Assembly: GCA_035084275.1 (NCBI GenBank)
Contig: CM068752.1
Location: 13,020,001 to 13,084,000, forward strand
Source of the DNA: Hydrolagus colliei
Lineage: Eukaryota
Reading direction: 5' to 3'
DNA: 64,000 nucleotides
Part shown: positions 29,199-62,300 of the stretch, one piece after another
Layout of the letters: each line of letters starts with the position of its first letter
How positions within the stretch are numbered: position 1 is the first letter of the stretch
The notes under the pieces: model-generated
Seen by the model: only the letters and a program-made list of their open reading frames with translations
Databases searched by the model: none
What the model was told of the DNA's origin: nothing
Position numbers and translations under genes: made by a program

Positions 29199-32100
29199 TC
29201 AAGTCAGTCTGGCATCTCAATGGCTCCAAACCCAACCCCCCTTCATTCCTCTCATTTTCCATCTAAATTAATCAACTCACCCCCTCTCTCTCCCCTCTTC
29301 TCTCCCCTCCTCTCTCCCCTCCTCTCTCCCCTCCCCTCTCTCCCCCTCCTCCCTCTTTCTCCCCCCCCCCCCCCCCCCCCCACTCTCTTTCTCCCCCGAA
29401 TCTCTTTCCCTCTCCCCCCCCCCCCCCCCACCCCCTCCCTCCCCAACCTCTCTCTCCCTCTCAAACCAGGAAGTGCAGCATTCAGAGGTAATCCTGCTGT
29501 ACTCTGAGGGAACAAAATGGCAGCACCACCTTCAGGCACTAGTAGCAGCATTACAAAATATTGATACTGATGCATTGTGCCGGATAAGATCCGGTTAATC
29601 GAATGGGAACCTTTTTTTTGAAGTGCTGGTTATACGGAAGTTATGGTTGATCCTTCACGGATAAACCGGCTTTTACTGTATTACTATATATGGAAATTAT
29701 ATACTAGCAATATAAAGCAATACGAATGTGGTTATTTCAATCCATGACTGTTTGCGAGACACTGCTGTGCGCAATTGGCTACTGCGTTTCATCCAAATAA
29801 TATATGGTAAGTTCACTTCATAGTATATTCCGTGAAGCGCTTTGAGACATTTAGAAGGTACAGGCATGCCTCCCCAACCACGGGGGATACGTGATAAGGC
29901 GCTAGTGACATCAAATGTAAGTATTGTTAATATCAATCCCTCCGTTTCGCCTCTTCCCTTTCCTCTTTCAAGGCCGGTTTGAAGACTTTCCTCTTCGATC
30001 GTGCCTTTTGTTCCACCCCGAACTCTTTTACCTCCCCTTCGTGTTTCACCCCTTCCCAAACACTCCCCTCCCAGCTCGGGTCACACGCCTCTTGTTCAGC
30101 GCCTTGGGATGTCCTCCCGATGCTCTATAAATGCAAATATAAATTGTTGTTGTTGTTGTTATTATGTCACTTGGCTTGATTGTGTGGTTTGATGAATGAC
30201 TTAACGAAAGGTGGTCCTGCTGTAAATGTGTTGTTGCAGGAGGTGCTGGTGGCAAAGGTGTGTGGGGGGCTCCGGTTGAGGTCTATGACGTAGAGGAGCC
30301 AGATATCCGGGACCCAAACTATGATGATGATAAACAGGTAATCTTCTCCCCCACCCCCCACTCCCTCCCTGCTCAGTGTGTGGTACTCCCAGAGCACAGG
30401 GTTGGGTGGTGGGTGGGGGGGGGGTGGGGGGGGTCTCACTAGGACTCGCTGTGTGTTGCGCTCCGAGGGCTCTTGTCCTGCTTCCTTGATATATCTGAAA
30501 GTGATACGCTGGATTCCATAGTAATACCTTATATATTCCCTAAAACGCGGATCAGATTCATTGCTCAACTCTGAAACCAATTCCGCCATTAGAGCCCCAA
30601 ACAGACTTCGCTGGGAATACTCAGCAGGTCAGGCAGCAACTAGTAGAGAGGGATAGTGAGTCAACGTTTCAGTTCGATGACTTGCATCAGAACTGATGAA
30701 ATCAGCGCTGTCTGGAAACCTCCCTTTACAGTGATGTCCTGGAGTGCAGTTGGAGTGGGGGCAGTTTAGACGATGGGATTATTGATATCCATTTCATTTA
30801 TAAACGACAGATGCAATTAATTACTGGAATATATTGCATGATTCTACGTTTTGTCATGGCTGTTGCCGCAAAATAGTATTGTAAATTAGTCCTGAATTTC
30901 ACCAAATTTTCCTCAAAATGTGGCTTCCATAATTTTGGTAAATTGGAGGATTATTTGAGGGATCTTCGGGGGTGTGAGCTGGCTCTGAGGTGACCTGGCT
31001 GGCACAGGGAGTGTAGCTGAGGCGTTCTATGTAATGGACTTTGGCGACTGCTATCTAGAGAGAGCAGATCTGCAATGCTCCAGCGCGCTGTTAATGATTG
31101 ACGAATCCTGTGTGATTAATAGGACACATCACTGGGGGAAGGGATTATTCCCATTTGGCTGCTGATAACCTGTGAGCCAAAACTTCTAACAAATAGAGCT
31201 GAACAACCAGCTCACCCCCTCTCAGGAAGCGATAATTTGTAATGGAAATAATGAAGGACCACGTGAGCTCATTCTGCATTTCAGACTCCTGGCTGACAAG
31301 GGATGTGTATTTTTGGTCTCTGGAAGGACTGACGATGATTGTTTGGTTTCAGGGGGAGACTGTGTTTGAGACGGTTGTTCCTGAATTGAATGAAGATGAG
31401 TTTGACAAGGCCGTGACATCGATTATTCAGGAGTACTTTGAGCACGGAGACACAAAGGAAGTGGCTGTAAGTTCATCTTGGTTTGCCACAACCTGAGCCC
31501 AGAATCTCACAGATAGAACAAAGCTGGTTAAAAGTGAATCCAGATTCTATTAGCCAACAAGATGGGCAGAGCGCTTTTTTTTCTGCGCTGGAAATGTCTA
31601 TGGTTTTACTTAAAGGGAATGAAAGACATACAGTGAGAGAGAGAGAGAGAGACAGACACGCACACATGCAGAGGTATCTTTGCTGCAGAATCAATTCAGA
31701 TATTTAAGAGGGAGATAGATACAGAAAGCACGCACACATGCATACAAAGGCACATACATACATGTGCAAAAACAAATCTACATAAGGTAATATGTAATAT
31801 TATGTAATAATAACAACACTTCCATTTGATATGGCGCATTATCACATGTTTGTGACTTGTCAAAGCGCTTCCCAGAATATCCTGCAAAGGAAATTGACTG
31901 TGTATTTGGTAGACATACTTGGGAAATAAGAGACGTAGAGAAAAGGTGGAGAGATGGGATTGAAAGATAAAATTGCCTTGACATAATGCATCTGTGCTGG
32001 TTCCATGTGTTAAATAGTATTGAATGTTTGTGGCCCTGGTACAACGACAACAACAAAATTACACTTAAATAGTGCCCTTCACGTCAGGAGGACGTCCCAA

Positions 32101-42650: not shown

Positions 42651-43516
42651 CCCCCGATATACGACACGGTTGCGATCCTGAAAAACACGCAAATCAAAAG
42701 TTTGTAAATCGGTACACGTTTTCCCATGCGGTCCCATTATATAACCTGAGATGCATTATTTTGACAAAAGTTTTGGACCTTAAACCCACTAAAATAACAC
42801 GCATCACACAAAATAACACATAGGCAAGAAGGGGTACTTGGGGTAACTGTACAGTACTGTACTGTAACACTGGCAAACTTTAATACAGTACAGTACTAGT
42901 AAACTTTAATACTGGCAGTGTGAGGGATAGGAAGTAGAAAGTTGATAATCTGGTTGCATCTGTAGCTGTAACACACTTTGAACTTGCCAGTATTTTGTCA
43001 TTATTCTTCTGTACAGTAGCCACCGTCGATCTAGCTAGCCCTAAAGCCCTCCCGATGTCCATAAGTTTTTCGCCAGACGCAATGCGCTTTATCACCACTA
43101 ATTTTGTATCTAAAGTGATGACTTTGCGGGATCTCTTCCCGCTAGCGGTATTACTGCTACTATTTCATTTACTGGTCTCTTTTCTGACATTGTAGAAACA
43201 CGATAGAGGCTGTAAATCGCTCGAAATTGCTGGGGAATTTTCGGAAATACAATAATACTGACCACGCTGTCGCTTCAAAAGAAGCTGGCTTTTAAACAAT
43301 TACATAGCGACATGCTATTGGCCAGTTGAACAGCTTGGATACAGTATACGTACTGCAAATTTACCGCAAAATACTATACTGCGCATGCGCAAAAAATAAG
43401 CTCATTTTTTGCAGTTTAAAATGAAATAAAACATTGTACATCGATAAAAAGGTGTTAAAAAATTATGTTTGTTAAATTGAAATCATGTAGAGATGTCGCA
43501 AATCGGAAGGTACCTG
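42651..43516 (-). mobile_element. Tigger deletion derivative (psq/CENP-B HTH remnant)
   Basis: Minus-strand VIKRIASGEKLMDIGRALGLARSTVATV; right end TACCTG|TA; left end eroded. Confidence 0.8.
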
Positions 43517-46744: not shown

Positions 46745-47350
46745 TAATCTGGACTACGGAAACTCTCTCCTAGTCGGCCTCCCCAGTTCCTCCATTCATA
46801 GGCTGCATCCCATCCAAAACTCTGCAGCCCGTGTACTATCCCACACCCGCCTCCGTGACCACATAACCCCCACCCTCGCCCGTCTCCACTGGCTCCCCAT
46901 CCTCCAGAGGATCGAATTTAAGATCCTCGTCCTCACCTACAAGGCCTTACACGGCCTTGCCCCATCCTACCTAGCCGATCTACTCTCCCCCTACACGCCC
47001 ACCCGGACCCTCCGTTCAACAGAACTTGGCCTGCTCCAAGCCCCCCGCCCGAACCGCCCCACCATCGGAGGCCGGGCCTTCAATTTCTCCGCTCCCACCT
47101 TATGGAATGCCATCCCTCAATCCCTCCGTTTCACCTCTTCCCTTTCTTCTTTCAAGGCCGATTTGAAGACTTTCCTCTTCGATCGTGCCTTTTGTTCCAC
47201 CCCAAACTCTTTTACCTCCCCTTCGTGTTTCACCCCTTCCCAAACACTCCCCTCCCAGCTCGGGTCACACGCCTCTTGTTTAGCGCCTTGGGACGTCCTC
47301 CCGACGTGAAAGGCGCTATATAAATGTAAATTGTTGTTGTTGTTGTTGTT
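46745..47350 (+). mobile_element. Young L2 3' fragment
   Basis: Little-decayed LDYGNS...LHWLP...RIEFKIL; the 3' end is nearly identical to copies at ~29935-30164 (+) and ~53781-54080 (-). Confidence 0.88.
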
Positions 47351-49331: not shown

Positions 49332-50216
49332 CAGGTAAACCTCTATTTAGGACGGGGTTGCGTTCCTGAAAAACGGTACTCCGATCGAAACATCCTAAAT
49401 CGAAACGCGGTTTCCCATGCAGTCCCATTATATAACCCGAGATATTTTTCACAAAATGTTCAGACCTTATATCCACTAAATAACATACAAAACACACAAA
49501 ATAACATGCATAGTCAATATGGGGTGCTTGGGGTAATTGTACAGTATTGTACTTTAATACTAGCAAACTTTAACACAGTCCTATGTTTTGATAATCTGCT
49601 TGCACCTGTAGCTGTAATATACCTTGAACTTGCCAGTATATTGTCCTTATTCTGTTTTATAGTAGCCACCGTCGATCTAAAGCCCTCCCGACGTCTGTAC
49701 CTTTTTTGCCAGACTTGTGCGCTTTATCACCTCCAATTTAGTATTTCAAGTGATGATTTGTGGGGTTTCTGGCCTCTAGCGGTATTACCGCTTCTCATTT
49801 CACTTACTGGTCTCTTTTCTGACATTGTAGAAATGCGATAGAGGCTGTAAATCACTTGAAATTGCTGGGGAATTTTCGGAAATACAGTAATACTGACCAC
49901 GCGTGCTGTTGTTTCAAAATCAGCTGCTTTTAAACAATGACGTAGCGACATGCTACTGGCCAGTTCAAACGCTTGGATACACTATACCAGGTGCGAGCAT
50001 GATTTACCTGCGAATACACGATGTACTGTGCGTATGGACAAAAAGGATGCGGCAAAAACGACCGCGATATTCAAAATACATACTGCCCATGCACAGAAAA
50101 GAATGTTGTTCGTTAAAATGAAACCAAGTGTCCATATCGATAAAAAGGTATTAAAAAATGATGTTCGTTCAATCAAAATGTCCTAAATGGAAGTGTCCTA
50201 AATCGAGGCTTACCTG
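49332..50216 (-). mobile_element. Tigger deletion derivative ending ~97 bp before the Siglec-like leader exon
   Basis: CAGGTAAACCTCTATTTAGGAC ... GTCCTAAATCGAGGCTTACCTG; homologous to 42651-43516 and 53247-54705. Confidence 0.85.
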
Positions 50217-50327
50217 TGTATATAGGTGTGTATGGGCTGATTGTCCACGGCCCATCATGCAGGTATCAATGTGTCTGATTGTTTTCCGCTCTTCTCTCCA
50301 CGTTCTCTCCAGGCTGTGATCCACACA

Positions 50328-50379
50328 ATGAGTGCCTCTCACTGCATCCTGGCACTGCAGTTGGTGTGTCTCATCCAGG
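50328..50379 (+). CDS. Siglec-like signal-peptide exon (MSASHCILALQLVCLIQ)
   Basis: Acceptor ctccag at 50312, ATG at 50328, hydrophobic leader, donor G|gtaagg, phase 1. Confidence 0.8.
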
Positions 50380-53300
50380 GTAAGGCTTCACCCTTTACCA
50401 CCATTATCTCTGAGCTATAGATCAATGGTAATCACTAACTATATGTGTGAGCTTTTCACAGGGACCCTTTGTCACCAAGGAACAATGGGCTTTGATCCTC
50501 TTTCCCACAGGGTGAGATTCTGGTCAGGTGAGACACAATAATAATTTCTCTCGCTGCCCTCATGCCGGGTAGTGTCTCAGAGTGCTAGACGGTGGTGGAG
50601 CACAACACAGAGACGGGGGATGAGATAGCAGCCATAGGCAGGTTCGAAGTGGAAGGTCTTCTGGTGCGATCTGAAGAGGCAAAGGAAGGAACAAGGTGGA
50701 GGGATATAGGAAGAGTGTTCCAGAGGTTTGGGGTGGTAATGCACTGGCTTAATGGTGGAACCATTACCCATCTCCCACATGCAACATGTGGGAGATGGAG
50801 CCAGCTGGTAATGGGTTGGAGAGTAAGCAGTTCAGACACTTTGAGAGGTGGCAGGGCATGAAGAGATTTGAAAACAAGTGCGAGGATCTTGAAGTTGTTT
50901 GGCGATATAGGGTGAGTGAAGCTTTGCTAGAACTGGTGCAATGGGTGTATGGAGTTTAGTGCAGGGTTGCAATATGTGGTAACCACATAATGTTGTACTT
51001 GTGTAAATATGAGGACCCAGAACATTTTAGTTCATGGTGTTGAAGGCGTGTCTGCAGCTTCATGTCTTATTGATGAGCCAAATAAACTGTTTAACTTGGT
51101 TTTCTCTGGAGTTGCTTATCGTATCAGAATAAATTCCGCCTCAGGGACATCTCTCCTCTTCCCCACCTCTGGTTCTGAGGACATAATTTGAAACATATAA
51201 TAATAATCCATGCATTTGATATAGCACCTTCCATTTCTTCTGGACGTCTCAAAGCGCTTCACAGATTATACTGTAAAGTGAATTGACTGTATATTTGTGG
51301 GTGAAACGTGGCAGCCATTTACGCACAGCAGTGTCCAACAAACAGTCATGAATTCAGTGACCAAATTTTTTTTTTGGTAAGGATTAGTATTAGGTGTGTG
51401 GCGCAAGGAAACTTGCCCAATATTTCACCCTACCAAGAATTAAACTCAGGTTTCCCATATAACACAATACCGTACAAAACTATAATTGTATAGCACCTTT
51501 CACATCAAATACAGGTACCCCACCCTAACCTCGTCAACCGCGAAACTCACGCATCCATGGTTTGGTAAATGTGACAACCCTTGCAAACCACGGCTTATAA
51601 CCCTTGCTTATCTACGGGTTTTAACACTAACACTCGTGTTTCGCGCTAGGACCCAGTTGCATCAACCAGCCTCATTGTCGCTTCGCGCTAGCGAGCACAA
51701 GAACCCAGTTGTGATGTCGCAATCAACCAGCGACAACGCTTCTCTCTTAGGATTAAGATAAATACAGTAACATGAATTTATTGTCGCTTCTCCGCAGCCT
51801 AGCTAGTAAGTTTGGGAGCATTGACTGCCAGGATCTGCAGATCTCTCTCTCTCTGTAAGTGTATCGTAGGCTGTAGAAGTCTTTCTCTGTATCTCAGGCT
51901 GAAGAGGGATCTTTCTTTCTCTCTCTCTCTCTCTCTCTCTGTGAGTGCATCTTGGACTTTAGAAAGGTTTCTCTCTCACCTTCTCTCTATTTCATCTTCT
52001 CTTCCCCCCACTCCCCGTCCCCCACCCCACCCTCTTCCCCCCACCCCCACCCCCACTCCCCCACCTCTTCCCAACCCCCGCTTCTCTCTCTCACCTTCTC
52101 TCTCTCTCTCTCTCTTCTCTGTCTGTGTGTAGATCAGTCAATCAGTCAGATAGCCTCGCGGATTGCTGCAGATGCACCCAAACTTACTCCCCCTATCCCC
52201 ATGTATGTTATAACTGTATGTGTTTTTTTTGTGTTTAGTTCTGCGAAACGCAAACTTACTCCCCGTATCCCCATGTTTCCCATGGGGCCTTGCATTTTCC
52301 AACCGCGAAAAAACAAACTTACCCCCGCCTATCCCCATGCTTGCTGTAGGGCCCTGTATTTTCCAACTGCGGTTTTACCAAACACGGAGGTTTACAGGAA
52401 CGTATCCCCCATGGTTGGGGAAGGATACCTGTATTACTCAAGTTATGGTTAAAAACTAAGTGAGTTGCAGTGATTCAATCCAGATACTTCTCAGCCCAAG
52501 TTAATTGATTGAGCTACTTGAAACATGTTTTGGGGATTCCGCCTGACACTAGCAGAAACTCATCACCACACCAGTTAGCACTTTAGCTTGCACTGATAAT
52601 AGGAGCTGAGTGGAATGACTCCCTGCCCCCAGTAACTGGTCTGCTCTTCCAAGTCTTGTCAATGAGCCAGACTGGCTGTGCTATCATCAGCAGCCCCTCA
52701 AATACTATGGACTCATCTGGCTCAAGAGCTGGACTTATGAGACCACCATTAAATGATGGTTCATATCTGTAAATGATGGCTCATATCTGTAAATGATGGC
52801 TCATATCTGTACATGATGGCTCATTTAATTGCCAAACAGACCCTTTTACCATCGCCCCACCCCCTGCCCCCCTCTCCCCTCCCCCTTAAAAGAGGATAAT
52901 CACTAGTTGGTCATTCCACACTGACTAGAGCAGGTTTGAGCTCTGACTAAGTGGATTGCAGATACCCACTGTGAGCCACACATCTCAGCTCGAATTATCG
53001 TATTCATGGGGTGGGGAAGGAGGTGATTGTAAGAGGGGTGTCATGTCCTGCCCATGTGTCTGCTCCCCTTCACGGTTGTTGTGTTGCTGTTCCACAATTC
53101 CTGTGTTATGGTGGAATGTCAGGCTTCTGGCAACTTAAATACATTTTGTGTAACTTTACATATTGGCGTAAGTCATGCTGAGGTTTCCAAATCTTTGCAA
53201 AGAAGTGGACAGTACAGAAAGTTACCACCCTGTCAGGTATTACATACAGGCAAGCTCTATTTAGGACGCTTCTATTTAGGACGTTTCGATTGAAGGAACA

Positions 53301-56300
53301 TAATTTTTTAACACCTTTTGATAGGACACCTGGGTTCATTTTAACGAACACATTTTTTTTTGCGCATGCGCAGTACATAGTTTGAATATCGTGGCTGCAT
53401 TTCCGCGTCCTTTGTATCCATACACACAGTCCATAGTGTATTGGCGGGTAAATCCAAACGTTTGAACTGGCCAATAGCATGTCGCTAAGTCATTGTTTAA
53501 AAGCAGCTGATTTTGAAGTGACACCACGCCACGTCAGTATTACAGTAATTTCCAAACATTACCAAGCAACTTCGATCGATTTACAGCCTCTACTGCGATT
53601 CTACCATGTCGGGAGTAGACAGCAGTAAGTGAAATGAGCAGCGGTATTACAGCTGGTGGCAACAGACAAGTCATCACTTTAAATACTAAAGTGGAGGTGA
53701 TAAAGCTCATCGCGACTGGTGAAAAAGGTACAGACGTCGGGAGGGCTTTAGGACTAGCTAGATCGACGGTGGCTACTATAACAACAACAACAACAAATTA
53801 CATTTATAGAGCGCCTTTCACGTCGGGAGGACGTCCCAAGGCGCTGCACAGGAGGCGTGTGACCCGAGCTGAGAGGGGAGTGTTTGGGAAGGGGTGAAAC
53901 ACGAAGGGGAGGTCGAAGAGTTCGGGGTGGAACAAAAGGCACGGTCGAAGAGGAAAGTCTTCAAACCGGCCTTGAAAGAGGAAAGGGAAGAAACGAAATG
54001 GAGGGATTGAGGGATGGCATTCCATAGGGTGGGAGCGGAGAAACTGAAGGCCCGGCCTCCGATGGTGGGGCGGTTCGGGCAGAATAAGGACAATATTCTG
54101 GTTCAAGGTGTGTTACAGCTACAGGTGCAAGCAGATTATCAAAACATAGGAGTGATGTGATGGAAAACATGGAAAGAATGCTGATTGTCTGGATTGAAGA
54201 TCAGATCCAGCGTAATATACCACTCAACATCCTGGTTATCCAAGAGAAAGCAAAATAATTGTTTAGGGAGTTAAATGATCAGAAAGGAGAAGGCTCAACG
54301 GCACCATCTTTCAGTGCTGGCAGAGGGTGGTTTCAAAGGATTAAAATACACTGTGGGCTCCACAACATCAAGATGAGTGGGAAAGCTGCAAGTGCCACTG
54401 TCACTGTCACACTACCAGTATTAAAGTTTGCCAGTAGTGTACTGTATTAAAGTTTGCCAGTATTAAAGTACAATACTGTACAGTTACCCCAAGTACACCT
54501 TCTTGCCTATGTGTGTTAATTTGTGTGTTATGTTGTGTATTCTTGTGTGTTATTTAGTGGGTTTAAGGTGTGAAAATTTTGTGAAAAGAACGCATCTCTG
54601 GTTATATAATGGGACTGCATGGGAAATTGTGTTTCTATTTAGGACATTTTGATGTAGATACAGTTTTTCAGGAACACAACCCCGTCCTAAATAGAGGTTT
54701 ACCTGTATTATTATTATCCCCTGTTAATCAGTAATGGAGTCACATTCAGTCACTCAGTCTGTCTGTCTGTTTCCTCTTCCACAGCTTCTACCGATGATTG
54801 GGGAGTCTCACATCCCAGGTCTGCTGCTGGGTTGGAGGGAGAGTCCGTGATTCTGAAATGTTCATTCAAACACCCTGACCCACCAAATGCACAATATAAT
54901 ATAATCAGCAAATTGTTCAAAGGTACTGCATGCAGTCCATACTCCTTGCTGTCCACGCAGTTGGTGTATAAAAGCAGCCAGCCCCAAAGATACAACAGAA
55001 TAAAATTAACAGGAAATCTGAAAAATAAAAACTGCTCAACTGAGATAAACAACCTCAATAAAGCTGATTCTGGTGACTATTGCTTCAGGTTTGAGATCCA
55101 GGATTTCGATAGTTGGACCGGACAACATCCCATCAATGTCGTGGTGTATGGTAAATATTCCTTCTCACTTCTTGTTACATATTTGACAAACCAGCAGACA
55201 GACAGACAAGTTTGCAGGTGTTTTTATCCAGTATTTACAGGTGCCAATTTTGACCAGGTGCCAATTTTGAACATTGTTTATTTCTGTTTCCTTTTGTTAG
55301 GTCGTCCTGGCAACCCCAATGTCCTCCCAAGTGAAGTGACTGAGGGGATCAGCACCACTTTATCATGTTCCTCCTCTAACATTGATGATCAGGCCAGAGC
55401 CAAGCTGACCTGGGAAGGAATCACTGAGCTGACAAAGCAGGAAACCGTGACTGAGGAAAAACAGTCTGTATCTAACCGGGTCCTCACCAGTTCATTCACT
55501 TTTATCCCCTCATACAGAGATCATCTCAAGCTGATCAAATGTGTGGTCAGTTCTCCAAACTACCAATATTCCAAACAAGGCAACATAACACTTCAGGTAA
55601 AATGTAAGTTATCCATACTGAAGCAGCGTTCAAATGATCCCAAACTGTACAGAAAGTTCTCAAGAGGTTTTGTATTGGCTCTGTTCTACCACCTGACCTG
55701 CCTTTGCCCCTGTTTACCAGTACATGCTTTGACTGAATACCCTCAGGGATATGTCTGACTAGGTGGATGGTAGATACTCAGCTAGAGCCACACATCTCAG
55801 CAGGAATTATTGTAGTGGCCACTGGTACCTCAGGGAGGAGGCTCGAGGTGATGATGTCAACCCACTGACTGGGGCTGGACTCTCCTGATGGTCAGAGCCA
55901 GTGTGGGGGGGGTGGGGGGGTGATTGTAAGAGGGGTGTCATGTCCTGCCCATGTGTCTGCTCCCCTTCACGGTTGTTGTGTTGCTGTTCCACAATTCCTG
56001 TGTTATGGTGGAATGTCAGGCTTCTGGCAACTTAAATACATTTTGTGTAACTTTACATCGTAGCGTATCTCATGCTAAGGTTTCCAAATCTTTGTAAAGA
56101 AGTGGACAGTGCAGAAAGTTACGACCCTGTCATGTATTACATACATCAAGTTCTATTTAGGACATTTCAATCAAAGGAACCTAATTTTAACACCTTTTGA
56201 TTGATATAGGACACTTGGATTTATTTTAATGAACAATTTTTTTTTCTGCGCAGTAGGTATTTTGAACATCATGGTCGCATTTCCGCATCCTTTTGGTCCA

Positions 56301-59300
56301 TATGCACAATACATAGTGTATTCGCGGGTAAATCATGCTCGCACCTGATATAGTGTATCCAAGCGTTTGAACTGGCCAATGACATGTCGCTACGTCAATG
56401 TTTAAAAGCAGCTGATTGTGAAGCGACACCACGCCAGATCAGAATTACTGTATTTCCAAACATTCCCGAGCAACTTCGAGCGATTTAGTACTGCGATTCT
56501 AGCATGTCAGGAGTAGACAGCACTCCTGTAGCAAGCAAATTATGAAAACATAGGAGTGATGTGATGGAAAACATGGAAAGAATGCTGATTGTCTGGATTG
56601 ATGATCAGAACCAGCGTAATATACCACTCAACACCCTGGTTATCCAAGAGAAGGCAAAATCATTGTTTAGGGAGTTAAATGATCAGGAAGGAGAAGGCTC
56701 AACGGCACCATCTTTCAGTGCTAGCAGAGGGTGGCTTCAAAGGTTTAAAAGATGCTGTGGGCTCCACAACATCAAGATGAGTGGGAAAGCTGCAAGTGCC
56801 ACTGTCACTGTCACACTGCCAGTATTAAAGTTTGCCAGTAGTGTACTGTATTAAAGTTTGCTATTATTAAAGTACGATACTGTACAGTTACCCCAAGTAC
56901 ACCGTCTTGCCTATGTGTGTTAATTTGTGTGTTATGTCGTGTATTCTTGTGTGTTATTTAGTGGGTTTAAGGTGTGAAAATTTTGTGAAAAGAACGCATC
57001 TCTGGTTATATAATGGGACTGCATGGGAAATTGCGTTTCTATTTAGGACATTTTGATCTAGATACAGTTTTTCAGGAACACAACCCCGTCCTAAATAGAG
57101 GTTTACCTGTATTATTATTATTATTATTATCGCCTGTTACTCAGTAATGGAGTCACATTCAGTCACTCAGTCTGTCTGTCTGTTTCCTCTTCCACAGCTT
57201 ATGCCGATGATTGGGGAGTCTCGCTTCCCAGGTCTGCTGCTGAGCGAGAGGGAAAGCCTGTGATTCTGAAATGTTCATTCAAACACCCTGACCCACCGAA
57301 TGCACAATATAATATAATCGGCAAATGGTTCAAAGGTTCTCCATGCAATTCTCAAGCGAAGTTGGTATATAAAAGCAGCCAGCCCCAAAGATACAATAGA
57401 ATAAAATTAACAGGAAATCTGAAAAATAAAAACTGCTCAACTGAGATAAACAACCTCAATAAAACTGATTCTGGTGACTATTGCTTCAGGTTTGAGATAC
57501 AGGGTTTCAGAAGTTGGACCGGACAACATCCCATCAATGTCATGGTGTATGGTAAATATTCCTTCTCACTTCTTGTTACATATTTGACAAACCAGCAGAC
57601 TGACAGACAAGTTTGCTGGTGTTTTTATCCAGTATTTACAGGTTCCAATTTTGACCAGGTGCCAATTTTGAACATTGTTTATTTCTGTTTCCTTTTGTTA
57701 GGTCGTCCTGGCAACCCCAATGTCCTCCCAAGTGAAGTGACTGAGGGGATCAGCACCACTTTATCATGTTCCTCCTCTAACATTGATGATCAGGTCAGAG
57801 CCAAGTTGACCTGGGAAGGAATCACTGAGCTGACAAAGCAGGAAACCGTGACTGAGGAAAAACAGTCTGTATCTAACCGGGTCCTCACCAGTTCATTCAC
57901 TTTTATCCCCTCATACAGAGATCATCTCAAGCTGATCAAATGTGTGGTCAGTTCTCCAAACTACCAATATTCCAAACAAGGCAACATAACACTTCAGGTA
58001 AAATGTAAGTTATCCATACTGAAGCAGCGTTCAAATGATCCCAAACTGTACAGACAGTTCTCAAGAGGTTTTGTATTGGCTCCATTCTACCACTTGACCT
58101 GCCTTTGCCCCTGTTTTCCAGTAAATGCCTGCTTTGGATCCAATTCCCTCAGGGATACTGGGCAGCAACATTTTCTTCCCAATGCAACCCTGTAAACTGG
58201 AGGGACTGAACATGCCCAGGAGGAAGCTGGAAGTGTTCAGGCTTGAGAGGATGACACAGAGAGTGTGAATGATGGGTTAAACCAGTCATTGGGGACGGCC
58301 ATTTTGTCCGGCCTAAGACACTCCCGAGGTTAACCACAATAACTGCCCAGTGAAGGAGTGGCACAGACTCCATCCCATTGACATTGGAAGGGAGGGCGAC
58401 TTATTAGTGGTGGCGCTGAGATGATTCAGGAAGAACAGACATTTTACACTCTTGTTTTTTTTAAAAGCTAGAAACCTCTTTAGGGACAGTAAAATGTTAT
58501 TGTGCTCATTTGAAACGCAAAATGCAATCAAAGATGGTGTGATGGTTTTGTCTGAAAAAAGAACCCAAAACAATATTTTAGGATTTACCAAGATGGTAGA
58601 ATATAATAATAATCCTTACATTTGATATTATGCCTGATCACTTTGTTCAGAAGTCTGTAAGTGCTTCACAGAATATATTCTACAATGGATGACTGTGTAT
58701 TTTGCAGTCTAAACGCACCAACCAATTCCACAGCAGTGTCCCGCAAACAGTTTTGGATTGAGTAGCCAAATTGTTATTTTTGGAAGTGATTATTACGCTC
58801 AGAAAGAACAATAGAATATAGGTTTTGAATTATAAAGGGCAATTGGATAATAATAGTCAGAAATTATCTGGGAGTATTCATAGCCACTGCTCCCTTTACC
58901 TGAGCCTTTAGGAGGTGAGCTCCTCCGTCCATCTCCATCACAAGCCTGCAATCTAGGATACACTATCAGAGAATCATAGAATGTTACGGCACAGAAGGAG
59001 GCCATTCAGCCCATCGAGTCTGTGCCGGCTCTTTGACCGAGCAAGTCACTTTTGTTAACCTACCAGTGGAAGATAGAGGTAGAGAAGGGAGTGAGATAGG
59101 AATTGTGAGCTTGGCACAGTGACAGTCTGGTACAAGACAAAAAGAGACACAAACACAACAGAAACTCTCAAAAGTACAGACAGCATCCTGTTGTTCAGAA
59201 CAATATCCAGAAAGGATTCAGGAATCTTTACCTGCGTGGTAAATAATTCACAGGGAAATGATACCTTTGCAGCTGACATCAATGTCATGTGTAAGTATTT

Positions 59301-62300
59301 GACTTTAACGGTTCCTGAGTGGATTATACCATGTTAGAGTGAGAGTTCAATTTGACTGGTCATGAGGCACATCAATAGATCACTGTCACTTGCTAAACTG
59401 TTCAAAATTAAGATTTGTCTACAGTCATCTTCCCAATGATTTCTTGAGTGTAATGTCTTTCAAATTCTCTCTTCCCCAATCCAGCAAGCACTCTTACTCT
59501 TTGTCTCCAGGTGTCTCTTGTGATTGGTCTAAGGAGAGGAGGGAAATGGTTAAAAATCAGGGAAATGTGAAAAATGGGATTTAAATATTTGTTAATTCCC
59601 ACTTACAGATGGACCCAGTGAAGTTAACGTTAGTCACGATGGGCTGAATTACAAGTGTGTCACGGATGCCAACCCTCCAGCAAACATCATTTGGAAACTA
59701 ACTGAATTCAAGACTAACAGAACAACCCAAATCGATGATACTAAGTCTATGAGCAGCCTGGCTATGCATGAATTAGAAGGCTTGTGTGTTTCCTGTCGAG
59801 CTGAGAATAAATATGGTCGTGCACATTCAGAAGCTTACTGCAAACCAAAGCCAAACCAGAGTAAGTAACTTTTCAGAGCTTTTTATCAATCAAGTTAATT
59901 GAACTGCAACAAAAATTATGTAGGTATGTATAATGTATGTATAATATACAATATACTGTATTTAACTGGGCATGAAGCACATCAATAGATCACTGTCACT
60001 TGCTAAACTGCACAAAGTTAAGATTTGTCTAGAGTCATCTTTCCAATGAATTCTTGGGTCTAATGTGTCACAAATTCTCCCTTCCCCAATCCAACAAACA
60101 TCATATCTAGTTGTCTCCATGTGTCTTTGTGGCTCGATTGTTAGCAATCTTGTTCCGGGGTCAGAATGTATGGATTTCATATTATTATTTTAGTTCACAT
60201 TTATGATTGTCAAATCTAGTAATTGCTTTTGCAGACAACCTCAGTGACCATTTTGTACTCATCAAGTTCCCATCAATTGCCCAAAGGGCGACCAACGTAT
60301 CTGGAAGATTATTGGAGTGACACTTCCATCTCCCTTCCAAAAGTGCACACATTCCATTCCAGATACCAGGAAGTTTCCATGGGTAGGAGGAGGCATGCGT
60401 GTGTAGGACTCTCATCTGGGTTAGATAGTAAACATGGAGATGAGTTTTCACATGTGTCAGACACCTGGCTGATCAGAAATAATTTGCGCTTTGGGCAACG
60501 AAAACCATTGACTCCAGTTCACAAAGGAAATCACATCAGTGGTCGCTCCTTATCCCTCACATGGAAGGTGCATCAATAGTAACCTGATGACCTGGACGTT
60601 GGCCATTTTATGCATTTTTGTTATAATATATTTGCCAAGGTTATCAAACTCAGAAGATTGTGTTAATACAATGCTGCCTCATATTAATCTGTAATATATA
60701 TACAGTATATACAATAATCCATAGAATCTTATTGCTAAACAGCTTTGATATAAATACGTTGATCAGAAATATTTGAATATTCATTTTGCAGGTTGGTCAG
60801 CAATATTGCTATTCATGTCTGTCAAAGTCATCTTTGTCCTTCTCTTGATGGTAGCTTGCTGTGTAAAATTCCTAAACCAAAGTAAGTTCTGTCAATCTCT
60901 CTTCTGTGCCAATGTTGTAGTTCCCAGTCCAATATCAGATAAAACCCACACAAACACACTCACTGCACTTCAATTCTGCTCAACCAATGTGGCAGCTCAG
61001 CTTACATTGAGACCTCAGTAATAAACCTCATAATTATTGATAATAATAATCCTTACATTTGTTATAGCTGCCGACAATGTGGGCACTTTTCCCAGTAACA
61101 ATATTATGCCAGAACAAAGTGCAGAATCATCCAAATGAATTGCAGTGATATTTTACTTTCTTGCACGTTGCTTTGTTCCTAGTGCATGGTCAATCTTAAA
61201 CAAAAAGTATCAATCATTTTGTTTTGTATTCCATCAGCGAAACAGATGAAAAATAATTCCCAAGCCGTGGTGATCCATGAATTTCCAACTTCCATTCAGG
61301 TATATTCAGGTCATTTTAATTGTTAAAGAATTGAGGTGGATTCCCTCTCTCAGTGGCTCAGAGTGAAATGCACTGTTTGGTCTATCATAATAATAATCCT
61401 TGCATTTGATATAGCGCTTTTCATATCTTCTAGATGTCTCAAAGCGCTTCACAGAATATACAGAGTGAAATATCAGAGCGAATTGACTGTCACTGAGTCA
61501 AGAGAAAGTCACCCCTTTCCTGTGTTTCCTTGCCATCTGTGATGAATTAGCTGATGTCAGAAGAGCCTTGAGTGGGGAACTCTGATTGTCCTAAGGACTG
61601 GCACGACAATATAATAATTTGCTGTATGTGCCAGGTTTTTTGATAAGCTCTGGCGCTCATTAACGCAAGTGTCCCTTGAGGCTAGATTAGTACAATTTTA
61701 CAGAAGGGAAGTAGATAAGCATCTGAGCAAAGAAAATGTTAAGGGAGAAATAGCTATAAAGTGGGAATAATTTTCAAAACGGGGCAATTTAGAAAAAAGA
61801 GGTAGCGGTGTGACAAGGTTTCAGAGTGCTCAACATGCCTTCTTCATACTTCCCTGTGTAGAAAGATTGTAATTATTATGCTGTTGGCAGGATAACCGGG
61901 TCATTGAGGAGGACAACAATCCCCAGGAAGAGTTTGAGTATGAAAATTGCAAGGTTGGATCGGCATCAGCTCGGGAGGAGCCTGGAGACAATTGGCTGCA
62001 TGATTCCCCCATCCCCAACAAGCGAAAGCATTGTAAAGCAGCCAAACTAAATGAAGAAAGCTTTGTATCGTAACAGAAAGGTGAATCAACAACAACTTGC
62101 TGTCCTTCAATATAGCACGCTTTATGTGGGGCAGTGTCTCAGAGCGCTTAACAGTGACAAAGCCTGGCAATGAGCTTGGGGAGGAAGGATGAGGTGACTA
62201 TAAGCACGGTCAAAGAGGAAGGTCTTCTGTCATGATCTAAAAAGGGGGTGGGAGGGGGCAAGGCATTGGAGAGTTCCAAAGCTTTGGGTGTAAGTGGCTG

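Follow-up and report, generated by a model that had tools for sequence, protein, structure and literature searches.

A gene in a 64-kb stretch of the genome of Hydrolagus colliei, a chimaera-type cartilaginous fish, contains two cassettes, each comprised of a V-set exon followed by a C2-set exon of Siglec type, and it raises the question of why the C2 exons and the introns joining them to V are nearly identical in the two cassettes when the V exons, which encode the putative lectin heads, are clearly different. The stretch (referred to here as the window) was studied on its forward strand, and all positions are window positions. With moderate confidence, we attribute this arrangement to an old duplication within the gene followed by patchy or repeated gene conversion, which would have homogenised the surroundings of the V exon and spared the exon itself.

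Mosaic divergence between two tandem units

The cassettes lie in two units of approximately 2.4 kb which abut each other head to tail (Table 1) and which differ at 155 of 2260 aligned sites. In a sequence-only reading of the locus, the C2 exons had been counted to differ at 2 of 303 nucleotides (nt) and the V–C2 introns at 3 of 150, and a recount gave exactly these figures, the two C2 differences being one replacement (A/V) and one silent change. For the V exons, the same reading had given 16 replacement and five silent codons; the silent count stands, but the replacements number 20, of which 13 are found outside the C-C' loop. At the nucleotide level, there are 32 mismatches over 354 aligned nt of V together with a 12-nt (four-codon) in-frame indel, compared with 11 mismatches over the 600 nt of its 300-nt flanks (odds ratio 5.3, p = 4e-7). 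Divergence did not become uniform when the units were aligned over their whole length; V stood at about five times the level of its flanks, and the concentration of change that had been proposed for it is borne out.

Beyond the V exon, the alignment of the units is a mosaic, with non-coding blocks at 0, 1.9, 6.2, and 13.6% divergence. The V–C2 intron, the C2 exon and the intron stretch at 55604–55690 together differ at 8 of 540 sites (1.5%), and the longest identical run between the units is 248 nt, a length that was reached in 0 of 10,000 permutations (P < 1e-4). A significant long identical tract, found along with non-coding blocks of such unequal divergence, supports the homogenisation of C2 and its neighbouring introns by gene conversion between the units. 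The identical island of 137 nt, situated inside an intron that is otherwise 13–25% diverged, would be a short and recent conversion tract. On the 5' side, the limit of the homogenised zone is marked by a 494-nt heterology present in unit A, which may plausibly have acted as a barrier to conversion tracts; an 85-nt indel also occurs in the non-coding parts of the alignment. The divergent V block matches the limits of the exon at both ends to within ~60 nt.

The intron of both units holds an internally deleted remnant of a Tigger/pogo DNA transposon (53246–54705 and 56151–57109), recognised by its Tc5 HTH (E = 1.6e-15) and CENP-B_N (E = 2e-6) domains. Two more such remnants occur upstream on the minus strand (49332–50217 and 42693–43348), and the short interspersed nuclear element (SINE)-like insertion nested in unit A (53780–54080) has copies of 94% identity at 47047–47347 and 29933–30120.

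The silent sites of V date it relative to its surroundings. V1 and V2 differ at 9.4 of 71.7 silent sites (proportion of silent differences, pS, 0.13), which is about seven times the level of the flanks (11/600, 0.018; p = 7e-5) and does not differ from that of the old-layer intron (59/434; p = 1.0). This silent-site excess means that V is older than its flanks, rather than equally young with a surplus of replacements. The sequence-only reading had itself cautioned that silent sites were raised and that C2 and the intron may have been converted, and with these silent sites, the mosaic and the 248-nt identical run, that caution proved to be its better-supported half.

It was possible to rule out two sources of error in the divergence of the old layer. 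Inflation by CpG decay is not responsible, as 12.7% remains without CpG sites. Overwriting of the block by another copy of the transposon was rejected since derived changes are symmetric (23:23) with respect to a third copy of the element, and the block therefore gives a fair measure of how far the units have diverged since they were duplicated. The duplication is old, the unconverted intron being ~13.6% diverged, or roughly half of the silent divergence from Callorhinchus milii, and its age would be about seven times that suggested by the homogenised parts.

A recent origin, in which the duplication or the last homogenisation would date to the 2% level and positive selection on point mutations of the binding face would since have produced the differences in V, would agree with flanks at 1.5–2%, with the non-conservative, charge-shifting nature of the replacements and with a V2 lineage that has 11 replacement changes (N) to one silent change (S). 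However, selection on replacements cannot produce the sevenfold silent excess of V, the ratio of replacement to silent substitution rates (dN/dS) of V is 0.62, and the 11:1 count is not significantly different from neutral expectation (p = 0.26), all of which makes this origin very improbable. Barely credible is an assembly artefact in which two haplotypes of a single V–C2 pair were laid in tandem. Haplotypes of immune genes can diverge strongly, but there is no N run within 12 kb to break the continuity of the sequence, the unit measures only 2.4 kb and its head-to-tail junction is clean, and a divergence of 13–25%, the 494-nt heterology and the 85-nt non-coding indel are far above allelic levels.

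According to the old duplication with later conversion that we favour, a unit of ~2.4 kb running from the end of intron 1 through the V exon, the 150-nt intron and the first C2 exon into the start of the next intron would have been duplicated in tandem within the gene. Later conversion between the units would then have homogenised the intron 5' of V (to 6%, then 2%) and also the V–C2 intron through C2 to ~90 nt beyond it (to ≤2%), with the V exon inside the converted zone keeping the silent divergence of the old layer (~13%). Purifying selection would have held the V core, the B-E-D sheet, and the BC and C'-D loops (proportion of replacement differences, pN, 0.006), and a neutral-like build-up of replacements would have taken place in three patches, namely the N-terminus/A/A'-B, the C strand with the C-C' loop, and E-F/F-G/G. 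The outcome would be two lectin heads with a common anchor (Trp5, Arg101, Trp110, and the G-strand contact positions) in different surroundings. Conversion tracts covering V would have been removed by selection. The position of the tract ends, within ~60 nt of both exon edges, suggests either that homogenised heads were selected against or that V was imported from a paralogue which can be aligned only in its exons.

Table 1. Gene features and blocks of divergence at the two-cassette locus. Mismatches are those between unit A and unit B.
Feature	Position	Strand	Basis and remarks
Leader exon, single, 5' of both cassettes	50328–50379	+	ATG, hydrophobic signal, phase-1 GT donor; tblastn with shark homologue P0009 and direct reading
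Duplication unit A (3' part of intron 1, V1, intron, C2a, ~140 nt of next intron)	52940–55740	+	Self-BLAST, MAFFT against unit B
Unit edges	52940–53023; 55691–55735	+	21/84 (25%); 7/45 (16%) mismatches
Identical island, 137 nt	53024–53160	+	Unit alignment; 0/137 mismatches against 55920–56058
Old-layer intron (5' half of Tigger/pogo remnant)	53161–53624	+	59/434 mismatches, 13.6%
Heterology, 494 nt, unit A only (internal transposon sequence and nested SINE-like repeat)	53625–54118	+	Gap in MAFFT alignment
Homogenised intron 5' of V1, outer part	54119–54475	+	22/357 mismatches, 6.2%
Homogenised intron directly 5' of V1	54476–54784	+	6/309 mismatches, 1.9%
V1 exon, 366 nt, Siglec V-set head, long C-C' loop	54785–55150	+	Pfam V-set, Ig_CD22; PDB match sialoadhesin; AlphaFold; family alignment
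V1–C2a intron, 150 nt (V–C2 intron block)	55151–55300	+	Direct comparison; 3/150 mismatches from twin, 2%
C2a exon, 303 nt (C2 exon block)	55301–55603	+	Pfam C2-set_2; 2/303 mismatches, 0.7%
Intron stretch ~90 nt past C2	55604–55690	+	3/87 mismatches, 3.4%
Duplication unit B, abuts unit A, tandem head to tail	55750–58140	+	Homology starts ~55750, ends ~58140 (self-BLAST, MAFFT)
V2 exon, 354 nt, Siglec V-set head, short (ancestral-length) C-C' loop	57198–57551	+	Alignment, Pfam, AlphaFold
V2–C2b intron, 150 nt	57552–57701	+	Read from sequence
C2b exon	57702–58004	+	Read from sequence
Third Ig exon, remnant 3' half	59127–59300	+	Comparison with Callorhinchus
Fourth Ig exon, intact, phase 1	59611–59857	+	tblastn with shark homologue P0009 and direct reading

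Siglec identity of the heads and structure of the gene

The assignment of the heads to the Siglec V-set, made in the sequence-only reading, was upheld by searches of two kinds, with the N-terminal domain of sialoadhesin ranked first both among PDB sequences (E = 1e-11) and by fold in Foldseek (template modelling score, TM, 0.77–0.82; 31% identity). Matches 1–25 of the fold search were sialoadhesin, Siglec-7, MAG, Siglec-8, Siglec-15, and CD33 (TM 0.7–0.8). In Pfam, the V exons possess the V-set (E = 3e-9 and 2e-9) and Ig_CD22 (2e-8 and 3e-9) domains and the C2 exon the C2-set_2 domain, giving the order of an N-terminal V-set followed by a C2-set that is expected of a Siglec. The AlphaFold models of V1 and V2 share a common topology, with predicted local distance difference test (pLDDT) scores of 90.9 and 91.5, respectively.

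The F-strand Arg and the two Trp residues had been said to be kept, and this is the case, with R101, W5, and W110 of both heads aligning to R97, W2, and W106 of sialoadhesin. In a family alignment of V1, V2, and 71 relatives (73 V domains), the position of the essential Arg (FRxE motif, strand F), which in Siglecs pairs with the carboxylate of sialic acid, is Arg in 72 sequences. Of the aromatic positions on strands A and G that flank the sugar, position 5 is W or F and position 110 is Y, W, or F. Residues C25, C83, F100, and R101 vary little or not at all. With F100 at the canonical position of the F-strand Cys, the predicted bond is a B-E intrasheet disulfide (C25–C83) instead of the canonical B-F one.

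The interdomain Cys of sialoadhesin (C17), which lies five residues before the B-strand Cys and forms a disulfide with domain 2, is lacking in both heads. Position 20 is Ser in V1 and Pro in V2, Ser or Thr throughout the chondrichthyan clade and Cys in 59 of the 71 relatives, and the C2 exon has only the two canonical Cys. This residue is typical of Siglecs, yet not decisive for membership. There is also a Cys in the C-C' loop (codon 49, ~54931–54933 in V1) and another two residues before the Arg (codon 99, ~55081–55083), both with equivalents in V2. This pair co-occurs in nine of nine sequences of the cartilaginous-fish clade (including P0001, P0009, P0025, P0035, P0036, and P0042), replacing the interdomain Cys of the 59 other relatives, although phylogeny confounds the association (Fisher p = 1e-9), as all nine sequences come from one clade. 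The pattern suggests a clade-specific disulfide, Cys49–Cys99, which would tie the C-C' loop to strand F next to the binding site.

The two cassettes are intragenic duplicates and not two genes because there is a single leader exon 5' of them and third and fourth immunoglobulin (Ig) exons 3' of them (at ~59.1 and 59.6 kb). The exon order is leader–V–C2, there are approximately four to five Ig exons in the gene, every exon is in phase 1, and the acceptor and donor sites, as read from the sequence, are identical between the V–C2 copies. Self-BLAST of the 64-kb window found no V or C2 exon beyond those of the two cassettes. At 150 nt, the V–C2 intron is divisible by three and is free of in-frame stops in both copies, such that its retention would add 50 in-frame residues; the corresponding intron of Callorhinchus is 134 nt, and so the in-frame openness here is probably due to chance.

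Around the third Ig exon, ~172 nt have been deleted in comparison with Callorhinchus (L001:12829–13000; window 59066–59300, junction 59121/59127). The deletion takes the acceptor and the first ~113 nt of the exon (strands A and B with the first Cys), and in the remnant the sole acceptor is a weak, purine-rich cryptic one that is in phase by chance. Either splicing probably passes over this exon or the gene has been damaged in part. A scan of 52900–59400 against Rfam gave no RNA family, and the intron 3' of C2b contains, at 58600–58800, a short interspersed repeat of which there are ~19 diverged copies (74–85% identity) across the window.

Changes in and around the binding face

Strands were taken from the AlphaFold models (DSSP limits), and the A'-B, C-C', and E-F loops were placed by standard V-set topology together with these limits; of the statistical partitions of V, all but this strand-based one were chosen after the data were seen. 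Differing positions make up 20 of 64 in the N-terminus/A/A', C, C-C', C', F, F-G, and G elements compared with 4 of 57 elsewhere (p = 0.001), and the two proteins are identical over at most 34 consecutive residues (P = 0.003). Variation among the 71 relatives is greatest in the BC loop and the C'-D segment, where V1 and V2 have 0 differences against 6.6 expected (P = 5e-5), which means that simple drift of loops does not account for the pattern. That the differences merely track the variable positions of the family was rejected, both on this absence and on a Mann-Whitney comparison (p = 0.18).

The pocket of sialoadhesin is formed by Trp2, Tyr44, Arg97, Arg105, Trp106, Leu107, and Val109 (PMC13086771), and the C-C' loop and G strand are the elements that set specificity in Siglecs (PMC10243309). 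The equivalents in the Hydrolagus heads are W5, the C-C' loop, R101, S109, W110, T111, and Q113, and all of these except the C-C' loop are identical in V1 and V2. Positions 106 and 108, which are interleaved with the G-strand contact positions, differ between the heads, and from the topology residue 108 (Asp in V1, Arg in V2) would point to the same side of the strand as W110, two residues away. Four V2-specific changes at 15–20 (E15, R16, K19, and P20) map to the A'-B turn, where the mammalian proteins have their interdomain Cys; by V-set topology, this patch is at the base of the domain near C2 and not at the sugar site. The change A93T is in the E-F loop.

All of the peptide motifs that the sequence-only reading had quoted for V1 and V2 are correct, and the trend from acidic to basic residues that it described is real, with a net charge of +2 for V1 and +8 for V2. 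Its central claim, that divergence concentrates on the sialic-acid-binding face, is about two-thirds right. The ligand-bearing sheet with its C-C' and F-G elements does hold most of the changes, but with the primary pocket conserved, and with several changes of a structural or interfacial nature, the wording "sialic-acid-binding face" overstates what is seen. The changes are of the second shell (loop length, the G-strand residue beside Trp, and net charge), with some of them off the site (the A'-B patch and L43). Because of the four-residue difference in C-C' loop length, the Asp or Arg beside the G-strand Trp and the difference in charge, the two heads probably differ in fine glycan preference or avidity.

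Positive selection, which had been offered as one explanation of these differences, is not supported. By the Nei-Gojobori method, V1 and V2 give a pS of 0.131 and a pN of 0.084 (dN/dS 0.62, p = 0.36), and C2a and C2b a pS of 0.014. Even in the three variable patches of V the ratio is ~1.0 (pS 0.20, pN 0.19), and outside them it falls well below this, with one N change to three S changes (pS 0.076, pN 0.006; p = 0.025). In comparison with Callorhinchus, dN/dS is 0.8–1.0 for V (dS 0.30–0.37) and 0.45–0.5 for C2, and the head is fast-evolving generally in this lineage.

Such values could also arise by relaxed constraint, whereby two partly redundant heads drift, differences cluster where the fold tolerates change and the limits of the tracts around V are due to chance. 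This would fit a dN/dS of ~1 but never above 1 in the patches, the higher ratio of V than of C2 relative to Callorhinchus, the loss of the invariant C-strand Trp in V1 and the Arg at a conserved Leu in V2, the truncation of the third Ig exon by deletion and the annotation of the Callorhinchus counterpart only as a partial model. We nonetheless consider it quite unlikely, as purifying selection is evident in the V core, the reading frame is open in both V exons, their indel is in frame, their splice sites are identical and the whole sialic-acid triad is kept, the most variable segments of the family are untouched and the differing positions are not those that vary in the family.

The direction of change was determined with Callorhinchus as the only outgroup, a distant one with which the polarity of silent sites is unreliable (dS ~0.3). 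Using this approach, 16 nt differences are V1-derived, 12 are V2-derived, and five are ambiguous (relative-rate p = 0.57). Those of V1 include the loop insertion, W43L and most of the silent changes, and those of V2 are mainly replacements (G15E, L16R, E19K, S20P, and D108R). The V1 lineage accordingly has ~8 N to 6–8 S changes compared with 11 N to 1 S for V2, a contrast which is marginal (p = 0.04–0.08).

This asymmetry bears on the possible import of a V segment. Here the whole zone at 54119–55690, V included, would have been homogenised, and one V exon, more likely V1, would then have been converted from a third and more diverged Siglec paralogue, the tract ending at the exon edges because only exons can be aligned between older paralogues. 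The coincidence of the divergent block with the exon is as expected from such an event, as are the joint rise of silent and replacement changes, the dense multi-nucleotide clumps formed by the A'-B patch (7 of 18 nt) and by the C-C' loop together with its indel, and the predominance of V1 among silent derived changes (~6–8 vs. 1) opposite the 11:1 of V2. However, there are derived replacements on both copies, which a single import cannot fully explain, no donor for the V1 C-C' loop or the V2 A'-B patch was found in the 64-kb window with up to three mismatches allowed, and the old-layer intron already supplies 13% divergence without any import. Given also the uncertain polarity of the silent sites, we regard import as unlikely.

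Several observations weigh against the old duplication with conversion that we prefer, or against the maintenance of two distinct heads. The silent divergence of V is only marginally above that of the 6% intron layer (p = 0.08). No excess of dN/dS occurs anywhere, and the argument that distinct heads were selected for is drawn only from the position of the conversion tracts. The partial deletion of the third Ig exon fits relaxed constraint. V1 has Leu (TTG) at codon 43 (54913–54915), a core C-strand position that is Trp (TGG) in V2 and in all 71 relatives, and thus in 72 of the 73 aligned V domains, by a single-base change, and V2 has R16 at a position that is mostly Leu. Finally, the searches returned no paralogue and no sequence of a close species, which leaves room for import of V from a third gene.

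Relatives, known Siglecs, and the meaning of two heads

The nearest proteins in the databases are those of Callorhinchus milii (57–60% identity for V, 73% for C2), namely a 'myelin-associated glycoprotein-like' protein (P0002, locus L001) and A0A4W3K8J6 (P0001). Protein searches, including an exhaustive search of representatives, gave nothing closer than 60% identity and no close relatives other than these two. The cassette duplication is specific to this lineage and postdates its split from Callorhinchus because the homologous Callorhinchus locus has one V–C2 pair and because dS is 0.14 between V1 and V2 vs. 0.30–0.37 between the species. The Callorhinchus proteins have the Cys pair and a short C-C' loop such as that of V2, but the duplication is not shared at L001. 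Two Callorhinchus V sequences (P0001 and L001:9707–10051), which are paralogues or alleles, differ at ~10 of 113 residues, four of them in the F-G hairpin (PGFDKW vs. MNFVIW), a hairpin that is also variable between V1 and V2.

Compared with sialoadhesin (Siglec-1; PDB 1QFO, 1ODA), the heads share the triad, the Cys of the B-E disulfide and the Phe in place of the F-strand Cys. They differ from it in having Ser or Pro for its C17 and in the extra Cys pair of the C-C' loop and F strand, and the gene has ~4–5 Ig exons in contrast to 17 domains; the resemblance is one of sequence and fold. More than one Siglec-type V-set domain in a single gene is known from human and ape Siglec-12, which has two (PMC6288428), and multi-V predictions with 3 to 11 such domains in a row are found in anchovy, mormyrid, stingray, lungfish, and catshark (P0003, P0004, P0005, P0006, and P0007, V-V-V-C2). 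In the Hydrolagus gene, unlike in Siglec-12 and these predictions, the repeated unit is V plus C2 rather than V alone, and both heads keep the essential Arg. A literature search found no paper on the multi-V Siglec-like predictions, nor one describing a Siglec in cartilaginous fish.

Gene conversion between Siglec duplicates, giving near-identical blocks with sharp boundaries, has been described for SIGLEC5/14 and SIGLEC11/16 (PMC6288428, PMC5701461). The near-identical blocks are common to these pairs and to the Hydrolagus units. In the paired Siglecs, however, conversion keeps the ligand-binding domains alike across two genes with opposite tails, whereas here it acts within one gene, with C2 and the introns alike and the ligand-binding exon different. 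In CD33-related Siglecs, Ig1 evolves faster than Ig2 (PMC6288428), and V is likewise faster than C2 here, both between the cassettes and in comparison with Callorhinchus (dN/dS 0.8–1.0 vs. 0.45–0.5), although the gene is of the conserved Siglec-1/MAG/CD22-like type and belongs to a cartilaginous fish. A fast V-set, patchy gene conversion and V-set duplication are all ingredients familiar from mammalian Siglecs and other immune receptors. Distinctive here are the repetition of V together with C2 inside a single gene and the sparing of the lectin exon by conversion. For the annotation of such genes, a near-identical C2 exon and intron should not be taken to date a duplication.

A further and tentative possibility, which we regard as rather unlikely, is that both lectin heads of this one Siglec gene work, either in series or as alternative cassettes, and that they share a common anchor, differ in the shape and charge of the subsites and are kept different by selection against ongoing conversion, with the C-C' loop tethered to the F strand by a clade-specific disulfide next to the essential Arg. 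Both heads would then be expressed and would bind sialic acid. If true, this would represent a design of intragenic paired specificity in one of the oldest lineages of jawed vertebrates, and if both heads are functional and distinct, they would provide a natural experiment on how the fine specificity of Siglecs is tuned by C-C' loop length, the neighbour of the G-strand Trp and charge at a fixed anchor.

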